This document shows positions 13,809-30,260 of a stretch of DNA of 64,000 nucleotides, one piece after another. Position 1 is the first letter of the stretch, and each line of letters begins with the position of its first letter. The stretch is from positions 124,001 to 188,000 of IMG/VR virus record IMGVR_UViG_3300042907_001080. One strand, given 5' to 3'. Made by a program: the position numbers and the translations under genes. The notes below the pieces were generated by a model. That model was not told the origin of the DNA, did not search any database, and was given only the letters and a program-made list of their open reading frames with translations.

Positions 13809-14789
13809 ATGCCAGCTGTTAACAGTACAATAGTCCAAGCAGACTACAATTCGATAAGAAACAAAATCGTTGCTGTGTTAGGCAACGGCAGTGGAAACTC
13901 TGGATATGGTCAACAGGTCAGAATAGTCTCTACAGAAGTTCTTGAAGGACAACGAGTCACCATTAACGAATGGGCAAATCTACGATTTGACATCATCAAT
14001 GCCTACAAGCACATCAACGGATCTAATCCGACTACGGCTGTGGTCGCAGACGGTGATACTATTAGATATACCAGTTCATTTACTCCTGATACCGGAACTC
14101 TCGACGTACCGCAAAAGCAATATGATGATTGGGCCGATAATATCACAACTAATAGATTTACGATAGCCACTAGTGAATCAGCTACCACAGCAGCGACCAC
14201 ATCAAGCAGAACCGGAGCATGGATCAGCCAGTGTGAATGCGTCATACAGTTTTATTGGACCAATGCCAATGATGCTAGATACTGGTTCAATAGTGGCGGT
14301 AAAATTAGGATCAGTGCGAGTCGAACCGGTGGGGTGCTTGGCACCCAGCAAAACACTAGTTGGACTAGTCTTCTCAGTGCTGCAGGTACACAGAACTTTG
14401 GCGGTGCTGTGCCTAGTGCAGGAACTTCTCCTAACGATGGCACCAATTGGTATAAAACCACTAATACTTTTCAAACATTTTATACAGCCACAGCCAGTAG
14501 CCCTTACGGATCTAACAACTATCGATTACAAGCTAGATGTGTTGATGTACCTTCGAACAGCGGAGGCACATCGGCTAGCGGTGAAATACGAGTGTTGTTC
14601 ACAGACGGATACACCGACTCGGGTGCAATAGGTCCTCCGTTTTTAAACCCACCCCCGGGTGATGACATAGATGGTACTCTCACAGTGAGTGTTTCGACAT
14701 TATTTGCCACGGGTATCATGGCTCCTAGCAGCGCAGTATTCACCGTAACTCAACCCACAGTTTCTATTGGGGCTGTCACTGGCTCGTAA
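13809..14789 (+). CDS. Virion structural protein (paralog B)
   Basis: Collinear paralog of 12890-13792 ('ARYWFNSGGKIRI', 'PPPGD...GTLTV'); preceded by TAAATA. Confidence 0.6.
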   Translation: MPAVNSTIVQADYNSIRNKIVAVLGNGSGNSGYGQQVRIVSTEVLEGQRVTINEWANLRFDIINAYKHINGSNPTTAVVADGDTIRYTSSFTPDTGTLDVPQKQYDDWADNITTNRFTIATSESATTAATTSSRTGAWISQCECVIQFYWTNANDARYWFNSGGKIRISASRTGGVLGTQQNTSWTSLLSAAGTQNFGGAVPSAGTSPNDGTNWYKTTNTFQTFYTATASSPYGSNNYRLQARCVDVPSNSGGTSASGEIRVLFTDGYTDSGAIGPPFLNPPPGDDIDGTLTVSVSTLFATGIMAPSSAVFTVTQPTVSIGAVTGS

Positions 14790-14813: not shown

Positions 14814-14821
14814 TATAAATA
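14814..14821 (+). promoter_or_regulatory. T4-type late promoter TATAAATA heading the GT/radical SAM operon
   Basis: Exact T4 late consensus in the intergenic gap. Confidence 0.7.
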
Positions 14822-14848
14822 AACTACGCAGTTTATCAAGGAGAACTC

Positions 14849-15199
14849 ATGAACGCACAGTTAAAAGCTGTATTGGATTTTGCCAATTATCAGCAGACTT
14901 TTTCAATCCACAAAAAAATTCTCAAAGAACGCACAGCTGCCAAACTGATGTACGGTTTCTCCGGCGGGCTGTTTGCCATTGATAGAAATCTGTTGACATT
15001 TGTTGAAATGCTGTGTAGCAAAGGCAGAGTTTCTGGAACGGTGCTGTTAGACGTCAATGAAAATCCCATATTGATAGAAAATCTAGAAGCTTTTCGTGAT
15101 GAAATCTTCAGCAGATATTTCGAAGTCACTAATGAATACTTTCAAGAATTTGATAAAATCAAGAAATCTAGATCTGTAGAAAAACTTATCACACAATGA
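14849..15199 (+). CDS. Hypothetical protein (first gene of the GT/radical SAM late operon)
   Basis: 116 aa, strong SD (AAGGAG), downstream of TATAAATA; ATGA overlap with the next gene. Confidence 0.6.
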   Translation: MNAQLKAVLDFANYQQTFSIHKKILKERTAAKLMYGFSGGLFAIDRNLLTFVEMLCSKGRVSGTVLLDVNENPILIENLEAFRDEIFSRYFEVTNEYFQEFDKIKKSRSVEKLITQ

Positions 15200-16056
15200 C
15201 CAATGGCATTTTAATTTTCGCACACAATAATCGTGAAGTAGATTATGGATTATTAGCAGTGATCAGCGGCGGTCTTGCAAAAAAACATCTTAATGTTCCA
15301 GTTTCATTGGTCACAGATCTCAGCACCAAGGAATGGTTGATTGAATCACATACATGGCAGCAGGTTGAAACAGTATTCGAGCATGTGATAATTGTAGATA
15401 AACCTGTCACAGATAATCAACGTGGATTACACGACGGTGTAATCAATAAAAAAATACCATTTTGTAATACCAATAGACACTCTGTATGGGACCTCACACC
15501 CTACGATAGAACGCTACTGATAGACAGCGATTTTTTGATATTCAGTGATAATCTAAACAAATATTGGAATGTGGAAGCTGACGTAATGATAGGTGATTCG
15601 ATCAACGATATCTACAGTGAAGAAAGATTAGGCTACCTTGATAGATATGTCTGTGAAACCAGCTGTAAAATGTATTGGGCAACCACAGTGATGTTCACGA
15701 AAAATCCACAATCTAAACTGTTTTTTGATACTGTGAATTTAGTCAAAGAAAATTACAAGCACTATGCTGATGTCTTCCGATTCGATCACAGACAATATCG
15801 AAATGACATAGCGTTTAGTGTTGCCAAACACATGCTAGATGGATTTGAGAACATGCACACACCAACACTCCCACCCGTGTTATCAGTCATGGACAAAGAC
15901 ATACTCACTGCTGTCGACAAAGACAAATTAACATTCTTGATTGATCATCGATTAGATGCCACATATTGTGCAGCATCTGTGACTGGAGTTGATATACATG
16001 TGATGAATAAACAAAGTATATTGAGACATCGACAACAGTTAATGGAGTTGATATGA
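15196..16056 (+). CDS. GT-A fold nucleotide-diphospho-sugar transferase-like protein
   Basis: DxD motif in 'TPYDRTLLIDSDF'; 'YRNDIAFS' and late 'HVMNK' resemble GT8-like enzymes. Confidence 0.65.
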   Translation: MTNGILIFAHNNREVDYGLLAVISGGLAKKHLNVPVSLVTDLSTKEWLIESHTWQQVETVFEHVIIVDKPVTDNQRGLHDGVINKKIPFCNTNRHSVWDLTPYDRTLLIDSDFLIFSDNLNKYWNVEADVMIGDSINDIYSEERLGYLDRYVCETSCKMYWATTVMFTKNPQSKLFFDTVNLVKENYKHYADVFRFDHRQYRNDIAFSVAKHMLDGFENMHTPTLPPVLSVMDKDILTAVDKDKLTFLIDHRLDATYCAASVTGVDIHVMNKQSILRHRQQLMELI

Positions 16057-16892
16057 ACTTTGGATATCTGTTGTTTGTAGCACACTATGATGACATTGAT
16101 TATCTCAAGTGCGCCTATGCTCTAGCTTTGAGTATAAAAACCACTCAAAAACCAGGGTATGACAGGGTGGCACTGGTAATTGACAACAAAGAATCACTTG
16201 CAAAATTATCAAGTCCGTGGGTGTTTGACACAGTGATCGAATGGGACCAAGAGAAATATTGGGATGGCAGATCATGGATGGACCAACTGTCTCCGTTTGA
16301 TCACACAGTATGCCTTGATGCTGATATGTTATTCCTACGAGATTACAGTCATTGGATTGATTATTTTATTGCCAACAGCGAATTGTATGTGGCCAATCAG
16401 GTCTATACCTATAGAGGCGAAACAATCACAGATCGCACATATAGAAAAACCTTTGACAGAAATTGTCTGCCGGATTTATACTCCATGTGGACTTTTTTCT
16501 CTAAAGGATCTGTGCTATGCCAAGAATTTTTTGAATTAGGTCGACAGATTATAAAAAATCCCCGCGAATTCGCCAATCAGTTTTTAAGTGAACACAGGCC
16601 TAAGGTAATTGGCACAGATGAAGCATTCGCATTGGCTGCTAACATACTAGACATCACTGACGACATTGCCTACGATTTACCATTTCCTCGAGTAGTGCAT
16701 ATGAAACCAATGCTGCAAAAATGGCCATGGCCGGCTGATACTTGGAGCGATCATGTGGGATTTTATCTTAATGCAGACGCTAGACTAAAGATAGGAAATT
16801 TTCAACAGAATGATATTGTGCATTACGTAGAGAAAAATTTAATCACAAATGAGTGTATACATATCTTGGAGACTAAAGCATGGAAACTATAG
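16053..16892 (+). CDS. GT-A fold (GT8-like) glycosyltransferase
   Basis: 'SPFDHTVCLDADML' DxD motif, 'GTDEAFA', 'VHMKP', 'HYVEK'; paralogous to the previous gene. Confidence 0.7.
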   Translation: MNFGYLLFVAHYDDIDYLKCAYALALSIKTTQKPGYDRVALVIDNKESLAKLSSPWVFDTVIEWDQEKYWDGRSWMDQLSPFDHTVCLDADMLFLRDYSHWIDYFIANSELYVANQVYTYRGETITDRTYRKTFDRNCLPDLYSMWTFFSKGSVLCQEFFELGRQIIKNPREFANQFLSEHRPKVIGTDEAFALAANILDITDDIAYDLPFPRVVHMKPMLQKWPWPADTWSDHVGFYLNADARLKIGNFQQNDIVHYVEKNLITNECIHILETKAWKL

Positions 16893-17497
16893 AAGATTTT
16901 GATAAATGGCTGAGAGAATACAAGCCACCAATTACACAGTATGTAGCGGTGTTTGATCCAAATACGGGTCAAGTTATCAGCGTGGGGCCAGATCATGCTT
17001 TTGCAGATCAAAAACATATAGTGCAGATATCACAAGAAATTGCTGAATCCATAATCACAGCTGAAATACAGATACACAACTGTCAAATAAATGTAGAGTC
17101 AGGACAGTTAGACATAGCTGAAAAAAAGACACTAAACAAATTAGATGATGTGTTGCATAGAATTCCTGATATCAAATATTCAGATCAAATTGAATCGGAT
17201 ATACATATAACATATAATTCAAAAAACAAATATTTGAAAATTCAACTGTCTACAGAATACGGCGGAACCAAAAAATACAAAGGCAACGACGGAACAAGAA
17301 AATTTATTTGGGATGGTAGCACCGATCTGGATTTTTTAATCACAGATTACAACGATCCCAACTTGATTTTTCAGATGTTTTCTGTTAAACTAAATGAACT
17401 AATAGGGCATAATGTAACAATTAAAAATATTGACTATGATAAGTTTAGTGTGTATACAAGACGCCTATTTAAAAATTATGTGATTGAATATAAATGA
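16880..17497 (+). CDS. Hypothetical protein
   Basis: 205 aa ORF translationally coupled on both sides. Confidence 0.6.
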   Translation: METIEDFDKWLREYKPPITQYVAVFDPNTGQVISVGPDHAFADQKHIVQISQEIAESIITAEIQIHNCQINVESGQLDIAEKKTLNKLDDVLHRIPDIKYSDQIESDIHITYNSKNKYLKIQLSTEYGGTKKYKGNDGTRKFIWDGSTDLDFLITDYNDPNLIFQMFSVKLNELIGHNVTIKNIDYDKFSVYTRRLFKNYVIEYK

Positions 17498-18411
17498 AAG
17501 TAATTGAATTTGATGTAGTTTTTTTAAGTTACGACGAACCTAACGCAGATCTGCATTATGCTGACTTGTGTAATAAAGTACCTTGGGCTAAACGTATTCA
17601 CGGAGTCAAAGGATCAGACCACGCCCATAAAGCCGCAGCAGAAGCCAGTGAAACAGATTGGTTTATCACTGTTGATGCTGATAATATTGTAGATCCTAGA
17701 TTTTTTAATATCGACCTTGACATGAGTGATCCCAAGATACAGGTCTATGGTTGGTGCGGCCGCAATGCAATTAATGGTCTTCGATATGGCAACGGTGGAT
17801 TGAAAATCTGGCGTAAAGATTTTGTTCTTAACATGAAAACGCATGAAAACTCCAACAGTGATCGCGGCCAAGTAGACTTTTGTTGGGAAGATGGGTATAG
17901 AAATTTTCCATTGACGTTCAGTGAAAGCGTTATCACAGGATCACCATTCCAAGCATGGAGAGCAGGATTCCGTGAAGGTGTTAAGATGACTTTGCTAGAC
18001 GGGGTCAAAGTTCCTCCTATGGAAATTAAAGAACGCATATGGTGGCACAATATCCATAGACTGCGCATGTGGTCAACTGTGGGTGCTCACGAAGAAAACG
18101 GAATTTATGCAGTATATGGTGCTAGATTAGGAACATGGATGGCTAATTGCACACAGTGGAATTATGTCGATGTTCGAGATTTTGAAATACTCAGAGATAT
18201 ATGGAATCAATACGGTAAACCGTATGAAGATGTAAACGGTGATGGTCTAGTAGATGAGATTAAAAATTTAGGCGAAAAAATAAAAATGAGTTTGGGATTA
18301 GATTGGCCGTTTCTTGATGCGCAGCAAAGTAAATTTACTTTAGATTTGTATAATGAAACCATGAATCTCAACGACACTTATTTTAAGATGCCGGTGCCAG
18401 CCAATGTATGA
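17494..18411 (+). CDS. GT-A-like glycosyltransferase/nucleotidyltransferase family protein
   Basis: 'DVVFLSYDEPNAD', 'RIHGVKG', 'FITVDADN' (DxD), 'NGLRYGNGG.K', 'AWRAGFRE'. Confidence 0.6.
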   Translation: MKVIEFDVVFLSYDEPNADLHYADLCNKVPWAKRIHGVKGSDHAHKAAAEASETDWFITVDADNIVDPRFFNIDLDMSDPKIQVYGWCGRNAINGLRYGNGGLKIWRKDFVLNMKTHENSNSDRGQVDFCWEDGYRNFPLTFSESVITGSPFQAWRAGFREGVKMTLLDGVKVPPMEIKERIWWHNIHRLRMWSTVGAHEENGIYAVYGARLGTWMANCTQWNYVDVRDFEILRDIWNQYGKPYEDVNGDGLVDEIKNLGEKIKMSLGLDWPFLDAQQSKFTLDLYNETMNLNDTYFKMPVPANV

Positions 18412-20713
18412 TATTTTTTATGTTTCAAAAGGCGAAGGAAATACTAAAGATTGGAATGCAATAAAGTCTAGGTATCCCCTTGCTCAAAAATTAACAAACA
18501 TAAAGTCTTACGAAGAAATTCGATCTAAATCTTTTACAAAAATGTTCTGGGTAATCTGGGACGATATAAATCTTACAGAATTTAATTTATTAGATTATAA
18601 AGCCACTAAGTGGGATGACATGTATGTTCACGTTTTTAAAAACGGAGAACACTATGATGGTATTTGTTTGTTTCCTAAATCGTTGACGATTTCTCAGCGT
18701 GAATTTCATCATAGATTTTTTACAGCTAAAAAAGAAATTGATATTGTTGCTAGTATTCCAAAACAATATAAAACATACAGTCCTAATACATTCAACGAAT
18801 ACCAACACATAACCGACGACATGTTTTGGCTAGTATGGCCAGAAGTTACTGTAACTGACAAATCAATTTTTGACATATATTTTAGTCATCATAATAGTTA
18901 TGACCGCAGAGAAAATCATGTATTTAAAAATCTCTGCAATAGTGTTGAATCTTATCTCAGCGGAGTAATCCTTTGCAGCAAATATAAACCTTTATCAAAT
19001 CGAGAGTTTGATAAACAGTATGCTGTAGATAAAAAAGAGCACAACAAAGTTGTCAGCAAATATCAATACCCAGTTTATAAAATTAATTCTTATGCTGATT
19101 ATTTAGAGATTATTGACAATGAAAAACAACAAATGTTTTGGTGTCAGTGGCCTAGTATAGAAATTATTGACGATACAATATTTGATTTTTATCTTGATCC
19201 TAACAATGGTGCATTAGATTATGATAGGCAAGAAAATCATGTATTTAAAAATTTATGCAATGATAAAGAATCATATCTAAGCGGAGTTGTTTTATTTTCT
19301 AAATCTAAAATTATTTCTAAGAAAGAATTTGATAGAAAATATTTAATTGACAAAAAAGAACATACCCGCATAGTTAGTAGGTATAGATATAATCGATACA
19401 ATATTTCCAGTTACGAAGAATATAAACAAATTATAGAAACAGAAACTCAACCTTTATTCTGGGGTATCTGGCCCGAAATAGCTGTTACAGATAATTCTGT
19501 TTTTGATTTATATTTTGATCCCAATGACGGAAAATACGATCAAGATAGAAAAACAAATCATATGTTTAAAAATTTGTGTAACGATAAAGAAACTTATCTT
19601 TGTGGATTAGTATTGTTTTCAACAACACAAGTTATTTCACAGAAAGAATTTAATAGAAGATATTTAATAGATAAAAAAGAACATGCAGAAGTTGTAAGCC
19701 GTTACAGATATAATAGATATGTGTTATCGTCATATGACGAGTATACCGACATTGTTAAAAAAGAAACCCAACCACTATTTTGGGGAATCTGGCCCGAAAT
19801 AGATATTATCGACGAATCGATATTTGATTTATATTTTGATCCCAATGACGGAAAATACGAACACGATCGAAAAGAAAATCATACATTTAAACACTTATTC
19901 AATGAAAAAGAAATTTTTGTTAACGGTGTAGTGTTATTGTCTAAAGATAAAATAATTGGTCAAAGAGAATTTAAACACAGATTTTTAATTGAGAAAAAAG
20001 AACATGATAGATTAGTATCTAAACATTCTTTATATGATGTTGTTTTTATTTCTTATAACGAACCCAATGCCGATGAAAACTGTAACAAGTTATTAGAAAT
20101 GTGTCCAAGAGCAAAACGTATTCACGGAGTTAAAGGAATTCACCAGGCGCATATACAAGCAGCTAAAATGTGCAATACTGACATGATATGGATCGTTGAC
20201 GGTGATGCTATTGTCGAAAATGATTTTAATTTTAATTTAGTTATGAGTAGTTACGACATAGACTGTGTTCATGTTTGGAAAAGCCGCAATCCTATTAACA
20301 ATCTAGAATACGGCAACGGAGGTGTTAAGTTATTACCAAGACAATTAACAATATCTGTTGATGTTAATTCGCCCGATATGACCACTAGCATATCGAAAAA
20401 ATTTAAAGCTATGAATACTGTGTCTAACACGAATTCATTTAACACAGATGAATTTGCTACATGGAGATCAGCATTTAGAGAATGTTGTAAACTAGCTAGT
20501 CGTGTAATCGAAAGACAATACGAGGAAGAAACTACACATCGTTTAGATGTATGGTGCTCAGTTGGTGTTGATAAACTATTTGGCAAATATGCAATTAAAG
20601 GTGCTCAGGCAGGTAGAGAATACGGCGAAACTAACAAAAACAATCCAGAGGCCCTTAAGAAAATTAATGACTTTGATTGGTTAAAGGAACAGTTCAGTGG
20701 AATACAATCGTAA
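18404..20713 (+). CDS. Repeat-expanded GT-A-like protein: about 5 degenerate ~107-aa units plus a C-terminal domain paralogous to 17494-18411
   Basis: C-terminal 'DVVFISYNEPNAD..RIHGVKG..WIVDGDA..YGNGGVK..WRSAFRE'. Internal repeats 'FW..WP.I...D..IFD.YF.......YDR..NH.FKNLCN..E.YL.G..L.....KKEH..VVS'. Confidence 0.7.
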   Translation: MYDIFYVSKGEGNTKDWNAIKSRYPLAQKLTNIKSYEEIRSKSFTKMFWVIWDDINLTEFNLLDYKATKWDDMYVHVFKNGEHYDGICLFPKSLTISQREFHHRFFTAKKEIDIVASIPKQYKTYSPNTFNEYQHITDDMFWLVWPEVTVTDKSIFDIYFSHHNSYDRRENHVFKNLCNSVESYLSGVILCSKYKPLSNREFDKQYAVDKKEHNKVVSKYQYPVYKINSYADYLEIIDNEKQQMFWCQWPSIEIIDDTIFDFYLDPNNGALDYDRQENHVFKNLCNDKESYLSGVVLFSKSKIISKKEFDRKYLIDKKEHTRIVSRYRYNRYNISSYEEYKQIIETETQPLFWGIWPEIAVTDNSVFDLYFDPNDGKYDQDRKTNHMFKNLCNDKETYLCGLVLFSTTQVISQKEFNRRYLIDKKEHAEVVSRYRYNRYVLSSYDEYTDIVKKETQPLFWGIWPEIDIIDESIFDLYFDPNDGKYEHDRKENHTFKHLFNEKEIFVNGVVLLSKDKIIGQREFKHRFLIEKKEHDRLVSKHSLYDVVFISYNEPNADENCNKLLEMCPRAKRIHGVKGIHQAHIQAAKMCNTDMIWIVDGDAIVENDFNFNLVMSSYDIDCVHVWKSRNPINNLEYGNGGVKLLPRQLTISVDVNSPDMTTSISKKFKAMNTVSNTNSFNTDEFATWRSAFRECCKLASRVIERQYEEETTHRLDVWCSVGVDKLFGKYAIKGAQAGREYGETNKNNPEALKKINDFDWLKEQFSGIQS
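18770..20030 (+). repeat. Intragenic tandem repeat, 321-nt (107-aa) period
   Basis: 'agaaaatcatgtatttaaaaat' at 18910 and 19231; 'tttgatttatattttgatcccaatgacggaaaatacga' at 19502 and 19823. Both offsets are 321 nt. Boundaries are approximate. Confidence 0.85.
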
Positions 20714-22130
20714 TATAAAAGGCAACGAACTTAAAGAGATTAACGGTAGATATGAATCTCGATATCTTGCTGATGCTGACTACGTGTATAAAGAACTAAA
20801 CAAAGTTAGTCCGAGCTTTTGTCTTGCTAAATGGTATAATGTTAGTCTACACATTCCTACGGGAAAAACACATAGTTGTTATCATCCTAGGACACATCAA
20901 GTTCCTTTAGAAGAAGTTCGAATTGATGTTAGTGCATTACATAATACAAAATATAAAAAAGAACAACGCAAATTAATGTTAGCTGGAGAACGTCCTAAAG
21001 AATGTGAATTTTGTTGGCAGATAGAAGATAGTGGTACGCAGTTAAGTGATCGTGCATATCGAAGTAAAGATGTTTACGAACACGGTTTAATAGAAGAAGC
21101 ACAGTTAGTAGAAAATCCTAATCCACGCTACGTTGAAGTAAATTTTAATCAAGCCTGTAATTTTAAATGTAGTTATTGCAGCCCTCATCTAAGTACAGCA
21201 TGGCACAACGATATTCAACATAACGGTGCGTTTATTTTAAAAGATCGTTGGCACAATGATATTAATTGGATGAAGAGTCTTAACATAGATAACGGGCCAA
21301 ACAATCCTTACTTGCTAGCGTTCTGGGAATGGTTGCCACAGATATATCCAACACTACATACATTCCGTATGACTGGCGGTGAGCCATTGATGGATAAGAA
21401 CACGTTCCGTATGTTTGACTATGTTAAAGAACATCCTAAAGAAGATCTGCATCTAAGTATTACTAGTAACTGTTGTCCGCCGGGTGATCAGTGGGCTAAA
21501 TTTATGACTAGTCTTAAAGAGATTACAGATGTAGATGCAATTGATCATTTTATGTTGTATTGTAGTTTAGACTCTTGGGGTAATCAAGCAGAATATATTC
21601 GCAACGGTATGGATTTTAATCTACTGTATAATAATGTATGTGATTATTTGCAAAATAGTGATAAACACAGTTTAACATTTATTATAACTTTTACCGCATT
21701 AAGTTATACAGGATTTTATTCTTACATAGAAAATATTTTAAAACTTAGAAAACAATATAACAAAGGACGTCAATTAGTTTGGTTTGATGTTCCACAGTTA
21801 TTAGATCCTGATTTTTTAAATCCTAAATTATTACCAGAAATGGTTAGTGAATTAGAACGCACTATAGAATTTATGAAATACAATCCTGAAACACGCTGGA
21901 ACGAATTTAAAGGATTTAGTGATTTTGAAATTAGTAAGGTTCAGCGTTTAATTGATTGGATTAAATCGGATACAGGTTTTAATCGTGAGCTGGCGATGGA
22001 AAATTTTTATTTGTTCTTTAGCCAGCATGATGCACGTAGAGATACAAATTTTTTAAATACTTTTCCAGAGTTAGAAAATTTCTGGAAAGAATGCGAGGTA
22101 AAATGCAAGAAAGCAATACACAAGCAATGA
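20697..22130 (+). CDS. Radical SAM protein with N-terminal Cys-rich (twitch/SPASM-like) domain
   Basis: CxxxCxxC 'CNFKCSYC', 'TGGEP'; N-terminal 'FCLAKW...HSCYH...CEFCW'. Confidence 0.9.
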   Translation: MEYNRNIKGNELKEINGRYESRYLADADYVYKELNKVSPSFCLAKWYNVSLHIPTGKTHSCYHPRTHQVPLEEVRIDVSALHNTKYKKEQRKLMLAGERPKECEFCWQIEDSGTQLSDRAYRSKDVYEHGLIEEAQLVENPNPRYVEVNFNQACNFKCSYCSPHLSTAWHNDIQHNGAFILKDRWHNDINWMKSLNIDNGPNNPYLLAFWEWLPQIYPTLHTFRMTGGEPLMDKNTFRMFDYVKEHPKEDLHLSITSNCCPPGDQWAKFMTSLKEITDVDAIDHFMLYCSLDSWGNQAEYIRNGMDFNLLYNNVCDYLQNSDKHSLTFIITFTALSYTGFYSYIENILKLRKQYNKGRQLVWFDVPQLLDPDFLNPKLLPEMVSELERTIEFMKYNPETRWNEFKGFSDFEISKVQRLIDWIKSDTGFNRELAMENFYLFFSQHDARRDTNFLNTFPELENFWKECEVKCKKAIHKQ

Positions 22131-22807
22131 CGATTTTCATATACGGTGATAGTTTTAGCATGTCTAGTGAAGTGAGATGCACTTCGTGGATTGATCAATT
22201 ACATGGAAAACATCAACTAATAAATCGATCAATTGCAGGTGCAAGCAATCATTATATATTTTTAAGATTCATGGAAGACTTAGACCGTATAACACCTGAC
22301 GATTTAGTTGTTTTTTGTTGGTCTGAGAATCAAAGATATTATCAGAAAGATTCTAAGAAGACACAAGAAATTCACCAGTTGTATCATAAACACTTTTATA
22401 ATCAACGTCTTCTTGAAATGCAGTCTGATATGTATTTGGATAAGATCGAAGCGGTTGTTAAAGAACGAAAGATCCGCATGTTGTTTTTCTGGGCTTTCCC
22501 TTCCGGATACGGTGATTCGAGCAATTGGGTATCTACTAAATTTGTATCCGAGGATAGCTTAGTTTATTCGCACACATTTGAAAACGAAGTTAGGCCAGCT
22601 CTGATATATTTCTCTAGAATAGAAATACCAAAAAAATATTTAAACACAGAAGAAAAACTGCTTGAGTTTGCCTCTAAAGATATGAGACCTAATCATATGG
22701 CTAACCAAAAATTGCACGACGAACTATTTAAAATAGTAGATGATGTTTTTCATCATAGACTAGCAGGTCAAATTAATTTAAAAAACAGGTTACATAATGA
22801 GTCATAA
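22127..22807 (+). CDS. SGNH/GDSL hydrolase-like protein
   Basis: Block I 'IYGDSFS', 'AGASN', C-terminal 'DMRPNH'. ATGA overlap supports the start at 22127. Confidence 0.6.
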   Translation: MTIFIYGDSFSMSSEVRCTSWIDQLHGKHQLINRSIAGASNHYIFLRFMEDLDRITPDDLVVFCWSENQRYYQKDSKKTQEIHQLYHKHFYNQRLLEMQSDMYLDKIEAVVKERKIRMLFFWAFPSGYGDSSNWVSTKFVSEDSLVYSHTFENEVRPALIYFSRIEIPKKYLNTEEKLLEFASKDMRPNHMANQKLHDELFKIVDDVFHHRLAGQINLKNRLHNES

Positions 22808-24155
22808 ATTACAATATATTAAAAACGTAAGAGATAGATTAAACAAAGTCGGTACGGGATTCTGTGCAATGAAGTGGTTGCACCAAACTCTGTATCTACA
22901 CACCGGTGATAATCACAGTTGCTATCATCCGCGCCCACATCATATTGGTTTAGATGAAATTGCAGCAGATCCTAGTGCATTACACAATACAAAATGGAAA
23001 AAAGAACAGCGTAAAACCATGTTAGAAGGCGGTCGCCCTAACGAATGCCAATATTGTTGGAATATTGAAGATCTACCAGGCGAGCATATCAGTGACAGAA
23101 TGATACATAGTTCCAGTGATTTCAGCGAACCACTGATTGAAAAACTAGCAGAATTACCTTGGGATGCTCCGGTTAATCCTCGTTACTTAGAAGTGAGTTT
23201 TGGTAACGGATGTAATTATCGTTGCGGTTATTGCTGCCCACAAGCAAGCACCATGTGGACAGAAGAAATCAAGAAGCATGGCAATTACGATCTAACCTAT
23301 AATCAGTATGGCATTGAGTTTATGACCAACGGAACATACTACGGTCCTAAAGACGAAAATCCCTACATTGAAGCATTCTGGAAATGGTGGCCAAGTTTAA
23401 AAAATGACTTACATACTCTGCGTATTACTGGCGGCGAACCTCTAATGAATCCAGGGGCTATGCAGTTTTTTGATTTGCTAGAAACAGAACCAAGTCCTCA
23501 TTTAGAAATTACATTAAACAGTAATCTAGGTGTAACCTTTGATCGTGTTGACAGACTTATTCAAAGAGTAACTAGTCTTGTTCGTCAAAAGAAGATCCGT
23601 AAATTTAGTTTCTTTACAAGCATTGATAGTTGGGGCGAGCAAGCAGAATATATGCGTACAGGACTTAAATGTGATCACTGGGAACGCAATATGATAGAAG
23701 TAATCAAGGCAGGTGCTACTGTAAATTTGATGTGTACCTATAATGTCTTGTGCGTTACTAACTTTCAACAACTATTAGAAAAGGTAATCGAATGGCGCGA
23801 GAAGTTTGGATTTGAGTCAGTGTCTTTTGATACACCGTACTTGAAAGAACCACCACATTGGATGATTAACATTCTCACAGATGATTTTATAGCACATCAA
23901 GAACGTCAATTACAATTTATTGTAGACAATAAAAAATGGTTCACCGACGTCGAATATGAAAAAATGCTTCGTGTTACAGACTATATGAAAGAGAATCCGG
24001 TAAGCAAAGAAAAGATTCATGCTGGCAGAAGAGACTTTTATAGTTTTTTTAAAGAAAATGACAAACGTCTAGGTACAGATTTACTAAAGACATTTCCAGA
24101 ATACACAGAATTTTATAATCTGTGCAAACAAATTTACGAAAATTATGACAAATAA
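22797..24155 (+). CDS. Radical SAM protein (close paralog of 20697-22130)
   Basis: 'CNYRCGYC', 'ITGGEPL'; N-terminal 'FCAMKW..HSCYHPRPH..SALHNTKWKKEQRK..CQYCW'. Confidence 0.9.
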   Translation: MSHKLQYIKNVRDRLNKVGTGFCAMKWLHQTLYLHTGDNHSCYHPRPHHIGLDEIAADPSALHNTKWKKEQRKTMLEGGRPNECQYCWNIEDLPGEHISDRMIHSSSDFSEPLIEKLAELPWDAPVNPRYLEVSFGNGCNYRCGYCCPQASTMWTEEIKKHGNYDLTYNQYGIEFMTNGTYYGPKDENPYIEAFWKWWPSLKNDLHTLRITGGEPLMNPGAMQFFDLLETEPSPHLEITLNSNLGVTFDRVDRLIQRVTSLVRQKKIRKFSFFTSIDSWGEQAEYMRTGLKCDHWERNMIEVIKAGATVNLMCTYNVLCVTNFQQLLEKVIEWREKFGFESVSFDTPYLKEPPHWMINILTDDFIAHQERQLQFIVDNKKWFTDVEYEKMLRVTDYMKENPVSKEKIHAGRRDFYSFFKENDKRLGTDLLKTFPEYTEFYNLCKQIYENYDK

Positions 24156-25347
24156 ATCCACTTACTGTGTGAATCCATACATGAATCTAAGTATTCATCC
24201 TAAAGGCATAGTTAAAACATGCTGCATGAGTACTCGAGAATTGGTTACTGACTCAGGGAAGACTACCATTAATAATGCTAGTATTTTGGAGTTTTGGAAT
24301 AGTAAAGATCGTCAACAAATGATTAGCAATCTTAATAACGGGGTTAAAATACCGGAATGCACATTTTGCTGGCAAGAAGAGGAAGCCGGCAAGGAAAGCA
24401 AACGAATTAGAGACAATAAAACGTATGCAAGTATTATTACTGATAGTGACATGTTACCAGTAGTTGTAGACCTAAGTATGGGAAATCTATGCAATATAAA
24501 ATGTAGGATATGTAGCCCAACACACTCTACTCCTTGGATGATTGAAGAAGCTAGTATACATTTTCCAAATAATAAACAAGCATATTTAAAACAACCGAGG
24601 TGGCAAACTGTTAAAGATAGTTTTGATTACGAAAATAAATTTCTGTGGGATGATATTACTGCATTATTGCCCAATGTAACTAAATTTGATTTTGCCGGAG
24701 GCGAACCTTTTTATATCGAAAAACACTGGAGTATTGTAAACAAATGCGTTGAGGAAGGGTGGAGTAAAAAACAACACATTCATTATAACACTAATGGCAC
24801 TATCTACCCAGAGAAATATATGTCATTGCTAGAAGAGTTTAGACTTGTGGATATACAAATCAGCAGTGATGGTGTCGGTAAGAAATTTGAATATTGCCGT
24901 CATCCAGCTGTTTGGGAAGAAGTAGAAGAAAATATTGATAAGTTTATTTCTGCAAAAAATAATAGCAAAACTGAATGGTTGCTATCTGCTTGTATTTCTG
25001 TTTCAGCATTTAATGTATATGATTTTTTTGAAACATTTGAGCATTATGCCAGCAAGGGCATCGGTATATATGTTAATATGGTGCACGATCATCATAGTAT
25101 CAAAGTGTTGCCTTGTGAATTAAAACAATCAATAATTAATAGACTCAATGCATCTGAATCTAAATATCTGCCACAACAGTGGAACAATGATAGAAATATG
25201 GTTATACAATACCTATCTAACACAGAATTTTTTGAATCAGACTGGATTAATTTTTGGGCAGAACTCGAAAAGCGAGATACAATAAGAAAAGAATCTTTCA
25301 AAGAGATCTTTCCTGAATATTTCAACGAAATTAAAAAATACTTATAG
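24145..25347 (+). CDS. Radical SAM protein with N-terminal twitch/SPASM-like domain
   Basis: 'CNIKCRIC', 'AGGEPF', 'YNTNGT'; N-terminal 'C..P...VKTCC...CTFCW'. Confidence 0.9.
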   Translation: MTNKSTYCVNPYMNLSIHPKGIVKTCCMSTRELVTDSGKTTINNASILEFWNSKDRQQMISNLNNGVKIPECTFCWQEEEAGKESKRIRDNKTYASIITDSDMLPVVVDLSMGNLCNIKCRICSPTHSTPWMIEEASIHFPNNKQAYLKQPRWQTVKDSFDYENKFLWDDITALLPNVTKFDFAGGEPFYIEKHWSIVNKCVEEGWSKKQHIHYNTNGTIYPEKYMSLLEEFRLVDIQISSDGVGKKFEYCRHPAVWEEVEENIDKFISAKNNSKTEWLLSACISVSAFNVYDFFETFEHYASKGIGIYVNMVHDHHSIKVLPCELKQSIINRLNASESKYLPQQWNNDRNMVIQYLSNTEFFESDWINFWAELEKRDTIRKESFKEIFPEYFNEIKKYL

Positions 25348-25355
25348 GATATAAT

Positions 25356-26582
25356 ATGTGGAATGATGCAGTAACACAGGTTCATTGGGAACCAACAGAC
25401 AAATGTAACAGTGGATGTTCTATGTGTCCAAGATATGATTCAAAAGGTTTTGAGATAAGCACATTAGAAAATAAAGAATGGACTTTAGAAAGTTTTAAAA
25501 AAGCATGGTCTGTAAAATTTTTATCGCAATTGCAAAAGATACTTGCTTGTGGTAACTTTGGTGATCCTTGCGCCTGTAGAGAATTTGTAGACATATATGA
25601 ATACTGCAGAGAAATCAATCCAGGCATGGGGCTTGCCTGTAACACTAACGGTAGCCTTAGAAATCCAGCATGGTGGAGTCGGTTAGGGGCTGTGATGCGT
25701 GAAGATCAAAATCTAGGTAACTACTGTACGTTTAGTCTAGATGGACTTGAAGACACAAATCATCTTTATCGTCGAAATACCAACTGGAAAAAAATCATGG
25801 AAAACGCCAAAGCATTTATTGATGCTGGCGGTGTTGCTCATTGGGATTTTATTGTATTTGAGCACAATGAACATCAAGTTGAGGAAGCTAGAGAACTAGC
25901 ACGTTCTATGGGCTTTAAGAACTTTAACGTTAAAAGAACTACCCGTTGGGCAAAATACAAAGACGGTGTTGGGTCATATCCTGTTTATTCCAAAGGCATA
26001 CACTTGTATGATCTTAAACAACCCAATGAAGATAAATTCAAACACAACTTTGAAGATTCGCAATACTTCAAGCAGAGCAAATATCAAAGTATCACGCTGA
26101 ATGATTTTAAAAATATGGTAGGTATCAAGAATGGGGACATGAGATTTGTAAATGGAAAATGGGAAACTATTGATCTAGATTCACTTAACATAGCGTGCCG
26201 CGCAGTCAAAGATGCTAGAATGCATCAACCGCACAATGAAATATTTGTAAGTGCAGGAGGACATGTTGCTCCTTGTTGTTTTTTAGGTTCCGAGCCTATG
26301 ATAGATACCAAAGTTAAAGACCGAGACGAAAATTATATCAGTATGATTAATGCTCAAGGTGGACTACATAGACTTAATATGCATATCAACGATATCTACG
26401 ACATACTGCAATTAGATATTTTCCAGAAATGGATTCCCGACACGTGGGATAACGAAAATGGTAATACTTCAATGCGTCCAGCGAAATGCGGACAATGCTG
26501 TGGTGTAGAATTTAATGGTCTCGATTTTGGAGAACTTGGAAACAAAAAAGATTCATACATTATCAAGGAAAACAATGAATAA
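25356..26582 (+). CDS. Radical SAM protein with C-terminal SPASM-like Cys cluster
   Basis: 'CNSGCSMC', 'GNFGDP', 'NTNGS', 'FSLDGL'; C-terminal 'VAPCC...CGQCC'. Confidence 0.9.
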   Translation: MWNDAVTQVHWEPTDKCNSGCSMCPRYDSKGFEISTLENKEWTLESFKKAWSVKFLSQLQKILACGNFGDPCACREFVDIYEYCREINPGMGLACNTNGSLRNPAWWSRLGAVMREDQNLGNYCTFSLDGLEDTNHLYRRNTNWKKIMENAKAFIDAGGVAHWDFIVFEHNEHQVEEARELARSMGFKNFNVKRTTRWAKYKDGVGSYPVYSKGIHLYDLKQPNEDKFKHNFEDSQYFKQSKYQSITLNDFKNMVGIKNGDMRFVNGKWETIDLDSLNIACRAVKDARMHQPHNEIFVSAGGHVAPCCFLGSEPMIDTKVKDRDENYISMINAQGGLHRLNMHINDIYDILQLDIFQKWIPDTWDNENGNTSMRPAKCGQCCGVEFNGLDFGELGNKKDSYIIKENNE

Positions 26583-27774
26583 TTTATGTGTCTTACCTTT
26601 TAATAGCATAAGCATAGATGCAGTCGGGCAATTTAGAGCTTGTTGTAGCAGTGGAACCAATGGATTCAAATTATATGCCAAGGATTTAACTCCTGAAGAA
26701 TTCATTAATAATAAAAAAATTGTAGAACTAAGACAGGATTTTTTAAATGGACAAAAGCCTAGTAACTGTGATCGATGCTGGAACATGGAGGCTATCGGGA
26801 ATCCTAGTTTTAGACACGTAGCAAATGAAAATCAATCTTATGGAATAAAAAATAACAAGACGATTGAATTTAAAAGTCACATAGGTTTTGAAAATATACA
26901 GTATCTTGATATTACACTAGGAAATAAATGTAATCTCGCCTGTCGAATGTGCAGTCCTTATAGCAGTTCTTTAGTTGCCAAACAATGGAATATCATTAAT
27001 AAATCACAGGGTCACAAGGAAATCATCGAATTTGATAGATCTACCAAAGACAAAATACTTGACACAATCAACAAATCTGTTAACTTAACAGAAATATACA
27101 TGTTGGGAGGAGAACCACTGGTATCTGAATTTCACGATGAGATTGTTGAACTGCTCATTGCGAACGGTAGATCAAAAAATTTAATCTTGCATTACAATAC
27201 AAACCTACAAATTGATGCTGAACGTAAATTAGAAGTATGGGAAAAATTTAGAAATATAGATTTAAGCATCAGTATAGACGGCCATGGTGATACTTATGAG
27301 TATATAAGGTGGCCTGGAAATTGGGCTAAATTACATAAAAATATAAACCTTGTAATTGATTATTCTAAACAGAATAAGAATATACTACCTGGAATAGCCA
27401 CCACTGTGCAAAATTTAAATGTTGATAACTTAGACCAACTTATTGATAGCATGCATGAACTATCAGATAATAAACTCAGCTTTTATTTTATTCCGGTAGT
27501 TCAATTCAATGAGCTTGACATAACACCCTTGCATGTTTTGGAAGAGTCACACAGCAAATTACAAAAGTATAGAAATACATCGTTGCATCGAGCAGATGAA
27601 TTATTAAATATGATTAAGGAAGCAATAGATAAATCTAAAAATGTGGACTCTAAAAGGGTGGTCGAATTTTTTAAAATGCAAAAAAACTATGATATGATAC
27701 GTAATCAAAATTTATTCAAAATCAAACCTCATTTTATAGAATACGCAAAACAATTCAAGGTAAACACATGGTAA
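26575..27774 (+). CDS. Radical SAM protein with N-terminal twitch/SPASM-like domain
   Basis: 'CNLACRMC', 'LGGEPL', 'YNTN', 'SIDG..YEYIRWP'; N-terminal 'CVLPF..RACC..CDRCW'. Confidence 0.9.
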   Translation: MNNLCVLPFNSISIDAVGQFRACCSSGTNGFKLYAKDLTPEEFINNKKIVELRQDFLNGQKPSNCDRCWNMEAIGNPSFRHVANENQSYGIKNNKTIEFKSHIGFENIQYLDITLGNKCNLACRMCSPYSSSLVAKQWNIINKSQGHKEIIEFDRSTKDKILDTINKSVNLTEIYMLGGEPLVSEFHDEIVELLIANGRSKNLILHYNTNLQIDAERKLEVWEKFRNIDLSISIDGHGDTYEYIRWPGNWAKLHKNINLVIDYSKQNKNILPGIATTVQNLNVDNLDQLIDSMHELSDNKLSFYFIPVVQFNELDITPLHVLEESHSKLQKYRNTSLHRADELLNMIKEAIDKSKNVDSKRVVEFFKMQKNYDMIRNQNLFKIKPHFIEYAKQFKVNTW

Positions 27775-28610
27775 AACTTACTATCAAAGAAAATACATTT
27801 AATGTAAAAAGAATCGTAGCATTCGGTTGCAGTTTTACAGCCGGGACCGAAATACTAGATTATCAATTAAATCCCTATTTTGTAGATTTAAAAAATAAAT
27901 TAGATGCGTATCAGTGGTGGGAAAAACTTAAAAAAGATCCAGATCAGATGAAGCTACAGCTAGAAATTCGAAAACAAGAACCCAACCATTCTTGGCCGGC
28001 ACATCTAGCTTCTTACTTGGGTGTGAACTTTATAAATTATGCAAAGCCTGGTAATAGTAATGAACTCATGTGTTGGCAGATAGAACAAAAATTAAATTCG
28101 GGAGAAATTACCGATGACGATTTAATTTTGGTCGGAACAACCGGAACCCAGCGATCTATGTTTTTCTCTAGTACCTATCCAGAACCTGTGCCGTTTTTAC
28201 TTTCAAATATCGAATCGTACAAAGTCGAACTATCAGAACATATAACAAAATATTTCACAGACGATAGACTCTTGTGGAATTATTATAGAGATTTAAAAGT
28301 ATTCGAATCAATAAAACAGAAAATAAATGGCAGATTGTTTGTGATCCCTATGGAACAAATTCGTGAAGAATTATGTCTTTGGCCCAGCACACACGCTTAC
28401 GGCACATATCGGGTAGCGTCACTTGAGAATGCTTTATTTTTTAACAAAATAATAAATCAATTACATAATTCTCAACTATTTGCAACTACAGATTGTTGTT
28501 TATACGATTTTAAAACGGAAAAAACTACATTACCACATGGACATTTAAATGAGGATGCTCATAAATCTTTCGCCGAACAGCTTTACAAAGAGCATGTTAT
28601 TATCAACTAA
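27768..28610 (+). CDS. SGNH-like hydrolase-fold protein
   Basis: 'VAFGCSFTAG', 'NYAKPGNSN', C-terminal 'PHGHLNEDAH'. Confidence 0.55.
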   Translation: MVKLTIKENTFNVKRIVAFGCSFTAGTEILDYQLNPYFVDLKNKLDAYQWWEKLKKDPDQMKLQLEIRKQEPNHSWPAHLASYLGVNFINYAKPGNSNELMCWQIEQKLNSGEITDDDLILVGTTGTQRSMFFSSTYPEPVPFLLSNIESYKVELSEHITKYFTDDRLLWNYYRDLKVFESIKQKINGRLFVIPMEQIREELCLWPSTHAYGTYRVASLENALFFNKIINQLHNSQLFATTDCCLYDFKTEKTTLPHGHLNEDAHKSFAEQLYKEHVIIN

Positions 28611-28611
28611 C

Positions 28612-28632
28612 CAGAATAGAGAAATTGTTCTG
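28612..28632. terminator. Possible hairpin at the convergent strand switch
   Basis: cagaata-N7-tgttctg between two convergent stop codons; weak stem, no U-tract. Confidence 0.25.
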
Positions 28633-29298
28633 CTATAATTTAATTAATGGATTTGTTATTATTGCACATAGATCAAGTTTCCAGAGTCCGTTGTGTTCGA
28701 TATTAAAATAGACTAATTCTAAATGATGTTCTTTGGCAAATCTGTTGGCACACTTGTTAATATGTTCATACATACAATCGTCGACAAATATAATACCGGG
28801 CTTCATGTTCGCATAACAATATTCTAAGTCAGTTTTTAAAACTTCGTCCTTATGGCTACCATCGAGTATTATACAACTCATTTGAGAAATATCAACATTA
28901 TGCACTACATCTGTAATTAACGTAATATTATCGCACTCTTTTTTATACAATTTTTGAATATGTCTAAAAGATGCGGGCTCTAACATAAGTTCGGGATACT
29001 TCGATCGTAGGTGCATTAAATGATCTGAGAGACCTTTCATTGCGAAGTATTCTTCAAAGTTGCTAGGGTCAACGGTTGTTATTGAATTGCTTGGGAATTC
29101 TTTTGCTAGTATATATGTAGTGCCGCCTGCAAATGTTCCAATTTCTAATATTTGTGTTAACTTATAATCATTGATTGCTTTGATAATAGGTGTTAACTTA
29201 TTCATGGGCATCAACGACATTGGTCGAGATGTTAAAATCTCTATTACTTCTTTTTCTACAGATGAATCATCGACTCTATACATAAGTAAATCTAACAA
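28633..29298 (-). CDS. Class I SAM-dependent methyltransferase (Methyltransf_24-like)
   Basis: 'ILEIGTFAGG' motif I, 'ILDGSH', 'KPGIIFVDD'. Confidence 0.8.
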   Translation of the reverse strand: MLDLLMYRVDDSSVEKEVIEILTSRPMSLMPMNKLTPIIKAINDYKLTQILEIGTFAGGTTYILAKEFPSNSITTVDPSNFEEYFAMKGLSDHLMHLRSKYPELMLEPASFRHIQKLYKKECDNITLITDVVHNVDISQMSCIILDGSHKDEVLKTDLEYCYANMKPGIIFVDDCMYEHINKCANRFAKEHHLELVYFNIEHNGLWKLDLCAIITNPLIKL

Positions 29299-29311: not shown

Positions 29312-29617
29312 CTAGAACAATTTATTAGTTTCGCTGGCAATATCAGTTTTCAAGCGGGTCACATCAACTTTAAAATCGATCTTTTTGATTTCATCCTTGT
29401 ATTCTTGGAGTGTGTTAAGCAATACGTCAGCGATGCTTTCGGAAGTTTGTTTAGTCAATTCATTTTTTACATCGATTTCCCATACTCTGCCATCTATAAA
29501 ATCCAGTCGTACTGAATCCAGATAGGCTACCGGCATGGTATTCATGTAGAGATCTTCAAAAACCTCCGGCCATTCTTTTACAAGATGGCGCGGAGGTTTG
29601 AACAAGGGATTAGGCAT
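29312..29617 (-). CDS. Hypothetical protein
   Basis: 101 aa, coupled to the upstream gene. Confidence 0.6.
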   Translation of the reverse strand: MPNPLFKPPRHLVKEWPEVFEDLYMNTMPVAYLDSVRLDFIDGRVWEIDVKNELTKQTSESIADVLLNTLQEYKDEIKKIDFKVDVTRLKTDIASETNKLF

Positions 29618-30260
29618 CAGCAGTTTCTTCTACCTTTTTAACTTTTTTAACAGTGGGATCGAGTTCTTCCGCTTCTTTGCGTAATCTTGCTGCTTCTTTA
29701 TACATAGCATCAGCTTGGCTACGATATGATTTTGCTAGATCCTTGTCAGTTAGTACAGCATCGGTTGCGGCCTGCGCTCGTATAGGAGCAGGTATATCTG
29801 AATCTACCGCAGGAATCGTATCATTTACTGTGGCTGCATTTTTAACTTCAGCTTTAGCAGACGGAGCACCTGCTACAAATGTGCATAGATCATCTACGGT
29901 GCAGTTTTTCTGTTCTGCTATCAGCGTGTTAAGATTAGCCAACAGCACAGTATCGTTGGTAGTAGGTGTCATCATTACAGCATCTGTGGCTACTTTAATC
30001 AATCTGCCATCTGCTTGCATGGCCCGCAACATAGGTCTACCATCCGGGAATGGGCGTATGTGCATGATTTCGCCAAACTCAAATGCATCCTGCGCTTGTT
30101 CTGTTTCTACCAAAGTCATAATCGAATCATGATATTGATCTGGCAGTTGAGCTACAGGTAATACTAGAGCCATGTTTGACTCTCCGGGCAACGTTCTAAA
30201 CACTACCAATACCTTGGCACCTGTGTTTTGAATTCTACCTATGTGTTTAAGGCTTTTCAT
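29610..30260 (-). CDS. Hypothetical phage protein
   Basis: 216 aa with a coiled-coil C-terminus. Confidence 0.65.
   Translation of the reverse strand: MKSLKHIGRIQNTGAKVLVVFRTLPGESNMALVLPVAQLPDQYHDSIMTLVETEQAQDAFEFGEIMHIRPFPDGRPMLRAMQADGRLIKVATDAVMMTPTTNDTVLLANLNTLIAEQKNCTVDDLCTFVAGAPSAKAEVKNAATVNDTIPAVDSDIPAPIRAQAATDAVLTDKDLAKSYRSQADAMYKEAARLRKEAEELDPTVKKVKKVEETADA

Follow-up and report, generated by a model that had tools for sequence, protein, structure and literature searches.

The 64,000-nt stretch analyzed here (the window; positions 124,001 to 188,000 of IMG/VR record IMGVR_UViG_3300042907_001080) belongs to an uncultured lake jumbo phage and carries a set of predicted sugar-transferring enzymes, followed by an array of radical SAM enzymes, just after its tail-fibre genes. 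Four paralogous tail-fibre genes (4974-7091, 7103-8917, 8937-11039 and 11088-12890, all on the plus strand), assigned to PHROG tail-fibre and tail-collar families, share an N-terminal region of 130-300 aa, and the last two also share a C-terminal region of ~130 aa. They are followed by two Ser/Thr-rich paralogues that are 42% identical to each other and that we have referred to as F1 (12890-13792, plus strand, 300 aa, 23% Ser+Thr) and F2 (13809-14789, plus strand, 326 aa, 24% Ser+Thr). F1 is a virus-only protein without any PHROG hit, while the nearest Atlas clusters of F2 are all viral and have no known fold. At the position of F2 relatives carry proteins of 650-1277 aa with a Gly_rich_2 domain, and in one relative the 672-aa protein found there matches F2 over about half its length. 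The tail fibres contain 17-21% Ser+Thr, and the upstream proteins as a whole 17-24%, against 10% in the replication-side genes. However, Ser/Thr richness is common in tail fibres and cannot be taken as specific evidence.

An exact TATAAATA, a motif that resembles the late promoters of T4, is located at 14814-14821 (plus strand), 27 nt before a run of 13 plus-strand genes, and is followed by AAGGAG and by the ATG at 14849. The window contains only four copies of this motif against 5.3 expected by chance, so that the count alone means nothing, although three of the four are located in short intergenic gaps. In addition, a TAAATAA core was found at the same distance from the start codon in 14 relatives, including relatives whose surrounding spacer has diverged. 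The 13 ORFs (14849-15199, 15196-16056, 16053-16892, 16880-17497, 17494-18411, 18404-20713, 20697-22130, 22091-22807, 22797-24155, 24145-25347, 25356-26582, 26515-27774 and 27768-28610) overlap by 4-68 nt or are 8 nt apart, and a convergent ORF (28633-29298, minus strand) ends 22 nt after the last of them.

The first gene of the run (a116, 14849-15199) codes for a 116-aa protein that gave no family hit but is conserved in relatives and in Ralstonia phage RsoM2USA. The next two code for GT8-like transferases, GT8a (15196-16056) and its distant paralogue GT8b (16053-16892; 23% identity, E 1e-5). Neither had a Pfam hit (PF01501 included). However, a profile built from 25 homologues of both families matched glycogenin-1 and -2 at E 1.3e-7 to 3.5e-6 over the nucleotide-binding half (profile positions 5-116), including the DxD, of which the second Asp (D112) is invariant; the full motif is DSD in GT8a and DAD in GT8b. 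An invariant His and a nearly invariant Lys are found near the C-terminus, although they were not aligned to the GT8 motif. A model from the nearest Atlas cluster of GT8a aligned with a GT8/Nucleotid_trans cluster at TM 0.63. The following gene (b205, 16880-17497) codes for a 205-aa protein without credible family hits, which is the least conserved member of the core (30-90% identical in relatives).

Two GT-A-like proteins come next. The first (17494-18411), with an invariant DxD, is unusually conserved and stays 87-93% identical where its neighbors are 40-70% identical. The second (18404-20713) has five ~105-aa repeats (DNA period of 321) followed by a GT-A-like domain at residues ~537-769, and its length varies from 344 to 973 aa among relatives. 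The support for the GT-A-like assignment is only weak: Glyco_tranf_2_3 gave 17.8 bits (E 0.0037) against a cut-off of 27, the profile found nothing in the PDB, and a poor structural model (pLDDT 57.8) had as best Foldseek hits exclusively GT2/GT-A enzymes, but at E 1.5e-3 or worse and with TM below 0.36.

Five proteins with a CxxxCxxC motif are found in the rest of the run. Four of them, R1 (20697-22130), R2 (22797-24155), R3 (24145-25347) and R4 (26515-27774), belong to the N-terminal-twitch radical SAM family NF033640, with 307.5, 294.7, 285.5 and 288.5 bits, respectively (cut-off 170). The fifth, Rc (25356-26582), with an N-terminal CxxxCxxC, scored only 37.1 bits, has a Cys-rich C-terminus instead and is therefore not a member of this family. 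Four of the five, including Rc (40.6 bits), passed the PF04055 cut-off of 29.5 bits with 30.4-40.8 bits, while R1 (CNFKCSYC motif) stayed below it at 21.9 bits but is covered by NF033640. R2, with an AlphaFold model of pLDDT 94.7, is the core type shared with RsoM2USA ORF349, and its Cys at 23, 42, 84, 87, 139, 143 and 146 (the CxxxCxxC and an N-terminal four-Cys auxiliary-cluster motif) are invariant across 51 homologues, the same pattern being found in the four paralogues. The SPASM model matched residues 8-76 of R3, and R4 is 24% identical to the radical SAM proteins of Vibrio phage KVP40. The same part of the run contains two weakly SGNH-like proteins, one (22091-22807) with a GDS and the other (27768-28610) with a GCS motif. 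The G-x-S of block I is invariant and an HP/H motif lies near the C-terminus, but Lipase_GDSL gave 19 bits (E 0.0017, for the second protein) against a cut-off of 23.6, and the family profile retrieved mainly SGNH/GDSL hydrolases from the PDB only at E 0.009-0.1. The convergent gene codes for a class I SAM methyltransferase (Methyltransf_24, 29.1 bits against a cut-off of 26.3) with a weak similarity to a putative sugar O-methyltransferase model.

The gene content given in the preliminary description, i.e., one motif ahead of the run, two GT8-like, two GT-A-like (one repeat-expanded), five CxxxCxxC and two SGNH-like proteins plus a convergent methyltransferase behind very Ser/Thr-rich structural proteins, was thus confirmed, although its designation of the cluster as late-expressed is an inference and not an observation. 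One point had to be corrected. The methyltransferase is not part of the plus-strand operon but the last gene of the convergent minus-strand unit, and it was absent from every non-identical relative examined.

The comparison with related phages, one of the checks suggested beforehand, showed that the order fibre array, F1, a116, GT8a, GT8b, GT-A, radical SAM is conserved across divergent uncultured phages, even in clades where the GT-A-like protein is only 40-50% identical, and that the module always follows the tail-fibre array and an F1-type protein. The only cultured carrier is RsoM2USA, the only one among 50,697 phage records with the GT-A-like gene. Its ORF355-347 have the order F1-like, a116, GT8a, GT8b, b205, GT-A, N-twitch radical SAM and second GT-A, and ORF355-348 lie beside virion genes confirmed by mass spectrometry. 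This phage has one radical SAM gene, no repeat expansion and no TATAAATA upstream, and all the genes are annotated as hypothetical and are not discussed in the corresponding paper. Downstream of the core there is an island of low GC (31-36% against 39-43% in the flanks) that in 26 relatives measures 2.7-9.6 kb and contains 1-6 radical SAM genes, and the gene content of which differs even when F1 is 93-95% identical; in this it behaves like a glycan-diversity locus. In relatives the same slot holds typical nucleotide-sugar enzymes: an NDP-sugar epimerase/dehydratase together with a 2OG-Fe(II) oxygenase (in two relatives, L241 and L247), and also a UDP-glucose/GDP-mannose dehydrogenase, a B12-radical SAM and DUF6492. 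None of the 14 cluster proteins has a transmembrane segment, and no flippase, polymerase or priming polyprenyl-phosphate transferase was found in the cluster.

Our best reading, which we put forward only tentatively, is that the cluster is a soluble, cytoplasmic glycosylation system belonging to the tail-fibre module of a large lineage of T4-like jumbo phages. The conserved core (a116, the two GT8-like transferases, b205, the GT-A-like transferase, the repeat-bearing second GT-A-like protein and at least one N-twitch radical SAM enzyme) would build a glycan on a virion fibre-type protein, most likely the F1/F2 family encoded immediately upstream and possibly the fibres themselves. The variable right-hand part, with further radical SAM enzymes, SGNH-like acyl-transferases or esterases and a methyltransferase, would tailor the sugars or their nucleotide-activated donors, so that closely related phages display different glycans. 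What the sequences show is the gene content, its synteny and its variability, while late expression, the function of the motif as a promoter, the acceptor, the glycosylation of any virion protein and the chemistry of every step are inferred. The interpretation offered in the preliminary description, a pathway building a radical-SAM-tailored, acylated or methylated glycan on the virion or else remodelling the host surface, is partly supported. A glycan or sugar pathway is supported by the match to glycogenin (a protein-glycosylating GT8), by the invariant DxD motifs in both transferase families and by the enzymes found in the slot in relatives. The virion as target is favored, but only inferred, from the synteny, from the conserved T4-late-like core and from the absence of membrane components, which indicates that the acceptor should be cytoplasmic and argues against host-surface remodelling. 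Acylation or methylation of the glycan and the role of the radical SAM enzymes remain suppositions. As to timing, only fragments of relatives appeared in metatranscriptome contigs, which carry no direction or timing and for which DNA carry-over is not excluded. The virion mass spectrometry of RsoM2USA covered only the major bands and did not report ORF355.

For the radical SAM enzymes, sequence and fold searches do not separate a sugar or nucleotide substrate (viperin, BlsE, MoaA, AprD4) from a peptide one (SkfB, SuiB, anSME), and no radical SAM enzyme is known to act on a protein-bound glycan. It also speaks against our reading that bacterial homologues sit in Bdellovibrionota next to housekeeping genes, with GT2 in only 4 of 60 neighboring genes. 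The twitch-type enzymes could instead act directly on the polypeptide of F1/F2, the fibres or a116/b205, by cross-linking, epimerization or oxidation as RiPP maturases and anSME do, with the sugars being added separately by the glycosyltransferases. SkfB, SuiB and anSME are among the best structural and sequence neighbors, NCBIfam gave weak hits to peptide maturase models, twitch and SPASM auxiliary clusters are typical of peptide-modifying radical SAM enzymes (PMC9012708), and tandem paralogues could each address a different site. However, no short precursor with a leader and no RRE-like domain was noticed among the called ORFs, on inspection rather than by a dedicated search, the candidate substrates have few Cys (1-3), viperin, BlsE and MoaA score about equally, and the slot holds nucleotide-sugar enzymes in relatives, so that we consider this alternative unlikely. 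Somewhat less likely still is the remodelling of the LPS, O-antigen or capsule of the host, for superinfection exclusion or to prevent re-adsorption of progeny, as was proposed for the GT8-rich hypervariable regions of pelagimyophages (PMC7029224). GT8 enzymes are common in LPS synthesis and the island is low in GC and hypervariable like O-antigen loci, but the lack of membrane components and the conserved linkage to F1 and the fibres speak against it, and a late start, as the late-type motif suggests, would leave little time to rebuild an envelope.

A diffusible sugar- or nucleotide-derived metabolite, such as an antimetabolite or signal, appears more doubtful. MoaA, viperin and QueE models gave weak hits, all the proteins are soluble, and the same radical SAM family is expanded in predatory Bdellovibrionota away from any structural genes. 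On the other hand, four transferase-like proteins, one of them repeat-expanded, and the strict linkage to fibre genes fit a polymer on an acceptor better, and there is no exporter or immunity gene. Modification of the phage DNA bases is very unlikely. T4-like phages glycosylate DNA and radical SAM enzymes take part in some thymidine hypermodification pathways, but the cluster lies in the morphogenesis unit behind a late-type motif, contains no kinase, hydroxymethylase or base-exchange enzyme, and includes SGNH-like proteins that do not fit, while likely DNA-modification genes (QueE-like, FolE) are located with the replication genes. 

A more far-reaching possibility, which we hold with less confidence than our best reading but with more than any of these alternatives, is that the NF033640 enzymes, a family for which we could find no characterized member, are sugar- or glycan-tailoring enzymes, and that a globally abundant lineage of aquatic jumbo phages uses interchangeable arrays of them to give a dedicated fibre-associated virion glycoprotein (F1) strain-specific, radical-modified glycans. 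This would be the first radical-SAM-dependent modification of a virus particle and would suggest a function for the large tandem arrays of the family in Bdellovibrionota.

Some of these features have precedents. The hypervariable region of the pelagimyophages, T4-like phages of SAR11, also lies next to the tail-fibre module, is rich in GT8 glycosyltransferases, and similar genomes differ there by radical SAM cassettes (PMC7029224). That study was descriptive and assigned the genes to host O-chain modification, without defining the conserved module, identifying the radical SAM family or noting the absence of membrane components. One marine contig binned as a Rickettsiales MAG (L120) and many IMG/VR contigs related to it carry the same ordered module found here. 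In mycobacteriophages, phage-encoded soluble glycosyltransferases beside structural genes are reported to O-glycosylate Ser/Thr-rich parts of virion proteins in the cytoplasm (Freeman et al., 2023); there glycosylation is demonstrated, but those clusters reportedly have no radical SAM enzymes, use different transferase families and modify the capsid and tail tube rather than a fibre-associated protein. The clade-specific clusters of the Megavirinae make rare sugars and attach them to surface fibrils (PMC10117803), as was invoked by analogy in the preliminary description, but these are eukaryotic viruses with unrelated enzymes and no radical SAM array. Finally, in Gram positive bacteria soluble GT8 and GT2 enzymes (GtfA/B, GlyD and GlyE) act in sequence in the cytoplasm to glycosylate serine-rich repeat adhesins, Ser/Thr-rich fibrillar proteins, in a system that is export-coupled and has no known radical SAM enzymes, and GlyE was among the fold hits of the GT-A-like protein.

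The window derives from an uncultured freshwater jumbo phage. Its DNA polymerase, encoded at 44394-47063(-), is 50% identical to that of Sinorhizobium phage Phosso and 47% to that of Agrobacterium phage Atu_ph07, both T4-like jumbo phages. Identical copies of the cluster region were found in IMG/VR on contigs of up to 281 kb, and related contigs reach 352–357 kb. The first scan of this database gave 510 confirmed matches, the 80 kept being 86–100% identical, whereas a megablast search of the 14.5-kb cluster against 50,697 deposited phage records found nothing. The sequence of the GT-A-like gene of the cluster is present in lake water metagenomes released from 2020 to 2024, and in a word-limited search at least 8,000 of the 90%-identity clusters of its protein matched at E 1e-5 or better.

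The gene content reported in the preliminary description, i.e., a run of glycosyltransferase-like, radical SAM and SGNH-like genes behind the tail-fiber genes, followed by a convergent methyltransferase, was confirmed. Upstream of the run we found a very large virion protein and four paralogous tail-fiber genes (4974-12890) that hit PHROG tail-fiber families. The four paralogs share an N-terminal 130–300 aa while their C-terminal parts are shuffled (8937-11039 and 11088-12890 share a 50%-identical C-terminus), and relatives carry different numbers of fiber genes. They are followed by two paralogous proteins of 300 and 326 aa, here called F1 and F2, that are 42% identical and contain 23–24% Ser+Thr, against 10% in the replication-side genes. 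After a gap of 59 nt that holds TATAAATA (14814) and AAGGAG come 13 plus-strand genes with overlapping or nearly abutting ends. The number of copies of the motif in the window is at chance level (four found, 5.3 expected), and the case for a function is positional. A TAAATAA core is located at the same distance from the start codon in 14 relatives whose surrounding spacer has diverged. In Ralstonia phage RsoM2USA, which carries a minimal version of the cluster, the motif is absent.

Five of the proteins carry CxxxCxxC. Four of them are clear members of NCBIfam NF033640, radical SAM enzymes with the twitch auxiliary-cluster domain at the N-terminus (285–307 bits, cut-off 170), and seven Cys are invariant across 51 homologs. 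The fifth (25356-26582) has the cluster at its extreme N-terminus and a Cys-rich C-terminus. The two GT8-like proteins (GT8a and GT8b) have no Pfam hit, but a profile of both families matched glycogenin at E 1.3e-7 over the nucleotide-binding half, including the DxD. The protein at 17494-18411 and the C-terminal third of 18404-20713 belong to a virus-only, GT-A-like family with an invariant DxD. The evidence for the fold is weak in this case, since the profile of the family found nothing in the PDB, hhalign found no link between the GT-A-like and the GT8-like families, and the AlphaFold model was poor, so that its fold matches are only suggestive. The N-terminal two-thirds of 18404-20713 consist of five repeats of ~105 aa, and the length of this protein ranges from 344 to 973 aa among relatives. 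The two SGNH-like proteins are distantly linked to each other through shared relatives and keep a G-x-S block and a C-terminal His motif; the top PDB hits of their profile are mainly SGNH enzymes, including the alginate acetyltransferase AlgX, but only at E 0.009–0.1. Searches against Pfam, PHROGs and NCBIfam found nothing for the 116-aa protein a116, GT8a, the GT-A-like protein and SGNH-like protein 1, and for the 205-aa protein b205 only a spurious, sub-threshold hit to C2_DCK_4th, while GT8b had one PHROG family of unknown function. Single-sequence searches of the PDB were uninformative. The methyltransferase passes the Methyltransf_24 cut-off and lies on the other strand, as the last gene of a convergent minus-strand unit of small unknown genes. 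This unit has its own exact copies of TATAAATA, in short intergenic gaps at 30778-30785(-) and 31506-31513(-), and may also be late.

Comparison with relatives separated a conserved core from a variable island. F1/F2, a116, GT8a, GT8b, b205, the GT-A-like protein, the repeat protein and one radical SAM enzyme of the R1/R2 type (two of the N-terminal-twitch enzymes of the window) are always present in relatives, while everything between there and the conserved convergent genes 29312-29617 and 29610-30260 changes. In the 26 relatives whose island fits in the retrieved flank, it measures 2.7–9.6 kb with one to six radical SAM genes, and in the window 10.9 kb with five. The content differs even where F1 is 93–95% identical. 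The island (18000-28000) is also compositionally distinct, with 31–36% GC against 39–43% in the flanks and the rest of the window. In different relatives the same slot holds an NDP-sugar epimerase/dehydratase together with a 2OG-Fe(II) oxygenase, a UDP-glucose/GDP-mannose dehydrogenase, DUF6492 and a B12-binding radical SAM, or DUF6473. These classical nucleotide-sugar enzymes are the strongest evidence that the locus handles sugars. The GT-A-like protein (17494-18411) stays 87–93% identical in relatives (loci L037-L082) whose flanking genes are 40–70% identical. These loci were retrieved with peptides from this same protein, so the set is biased, but the contrast within each locus is real.

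The synteny is deep. A search of IMG/VR with a 43%-identical homolog from L120, a marine contig binned as a Rickettsiales MAG, brought 80 further loci, nearly all of them with the same order, i.e., fiber paralogs, F1, a116, GT8a, GT8b, GT-A-like and then one to six radical SAM genes. A few loci have the transferase core with no radical SAM gene or only one. Ralstonia phage RsoM2USA carries a minimal version (ORF355-348) beside virion genes confirmed by mass spectrometry, and is the only one of 50,697 phage records with the GT-A-like gene; a scan of IMG/VR with its GT-A-like protein found no relatives. In this phage the GT-A-like gene is ORF350, the radical SAM gene is ORF349 and the counterpart of F1 is ORF355. 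F1 therefore belongs to the module. At this position relatives carry proteins of 650–1277 aa with a Gly_rich_2 domain, and in one the F2-like part covers about half of a 672-aa protein, which ties the F family to fibers. A possible connection of F2 with “rSAM target Cys-rich repeat” proteins, found among Atlas clusters, was rejected because its score (0.70) is at chance level and F2 has only three Cys. Contigs binned as Bacteroidota, Bdellovibrionota, Flavobacteriales or Rickettsiales MAGs (L083, L088, L106, L120 and L133) carry the phage-type gene order, and L120 and L133 include the GT-A-like gene; they are probably phage contigs placed in the wrong bin.

None of the 14 cluster proteins has a hydrophobic segment long enough to span a membrane (maximum Kyte-Doolittle 19-residue mean 1.34, and 1.44 for F2), and there is no flippase, polymerase or priming transferase. 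The acceptor should therefore be cytoplasmic and, together with the linkage to the fibers and the late-type motif, this favors a virion protein over the host envelope. The interpretation put forward in the preliminary description, a phage-encoded pathway building an unusual glycan on the virion or remodeling the host surface, is supported only in part. That the locus is a sugar pathway is supported by the analysis and a virion target is favored, but late timing and the chemistry of the pathway are inferred from sequence alone. No RNA run was listed for this phage, and four metatranscriptome runs contained only short contigs of relatives, 80–95% identical, that carry no direction or timing.

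The role of the radical SAM enzymes could not be narrowed down by structure or sequence. A confident model of R2 (pLDDT 94.7) matched only the generic radical SAM core, with SkfB, SuiB, viperin, anSME, BlsE and MoaA all aligning at TM 0.33–0.37 by query, so that peptide substrates could not be separated from sugar or nucleotide substrates, and profile searches gave the same picture. Our literature search found no paper on this family. The four paralogs are only 17–27% identical to one another and each has closer relatives in other phages or in bacteria than within this phage, indicating that they are old subfamilies and not recent duplicates. The radical SAM genes of phage KVP40 are only 24% identical and sit in a different context, so they are not a model for this cluster. 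Bacterial homologs are concentrated in the predatory Bdellovibrionota (L087, L096, L115, L127, L152 and other chromosomal loci), where they also form tandem arrays of up to nine radical SAM paralogs (in L152), seven of them N-twitch-like. These arrays are flanked mostly by housekeeping genes, such as recA and the arginyl-tRNA synthetase gene, and their neighbors gave no pathway context. In a tree, phage and bacterial copies are interleaved.

In a study of pelagimyophages, GT8 genes and radical SAM cassettes were noted in the hypervariable region beside the tail fibers and a modification of the host O-chain was proposed (PMC7029224). The co-occurrence is therefore not new. What was not described there is the ordered module that includes F1, the identity of the radical SAM family, the nucleotide-sugar enzymes in the same slot, the absence of membrane components and the cultured representative, RsoM2USA. 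Functional analogs are the glycosylation of mycobacteriophage virions, the cytoplasmic GT8/GT2 glycosylation of serine-rich adhesins and the fibril glycosylation of Megavirinae (PMC10117803), none of which is known to use radical SAM enzymes. We consider the locus a phage glycosylation island, with a real chance of new chemistry. Phage-encoded glycosylation of virions is known from only a few systems, none of them known to involve radical SAM chemistry, while the module is highly abundant and deeply conserved next to the host-recognition genes, yet every gene is annotated as hypothetical. If the product sits on the fibers, it could affect adsorption, host range, particle stability or escape from host defenses in major freshwater and marine phage populations. 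The module also gives a genetic context for a whole radical SAM family of unknown function, and RsoM2USA provides one cultured system for its study.

Likely DNA-modification genes lie elsewhere, in the replication-side module. At 33650-34504(-), 38228-38974(-) and 35666-36205(-) we found a QueE-like radical SAM (phrog_2076, E 6.6e-54), a FolE-type GTP cyclohydrolase I and a phosphoribosyltransferase-like protein. This looks like a 7-deazaguanine pathway, although the NCBIfam scores are below the curated cut-offs, and it gives the window a sixth radical SAM gene. A tRNA-Glu (anticodon TTC) is located at 36512-36587(+), inside a region of minus-strand genes, and overlaps the mechanically called ORF 36177-36644(-), which is therefore probably not a gene. 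Finally, the 785-aa protein encoded at 54115-56472(-) is a strong match to a phage ATP-dependent (Lon-like) protease family (phrog_4871, E 4e-249).
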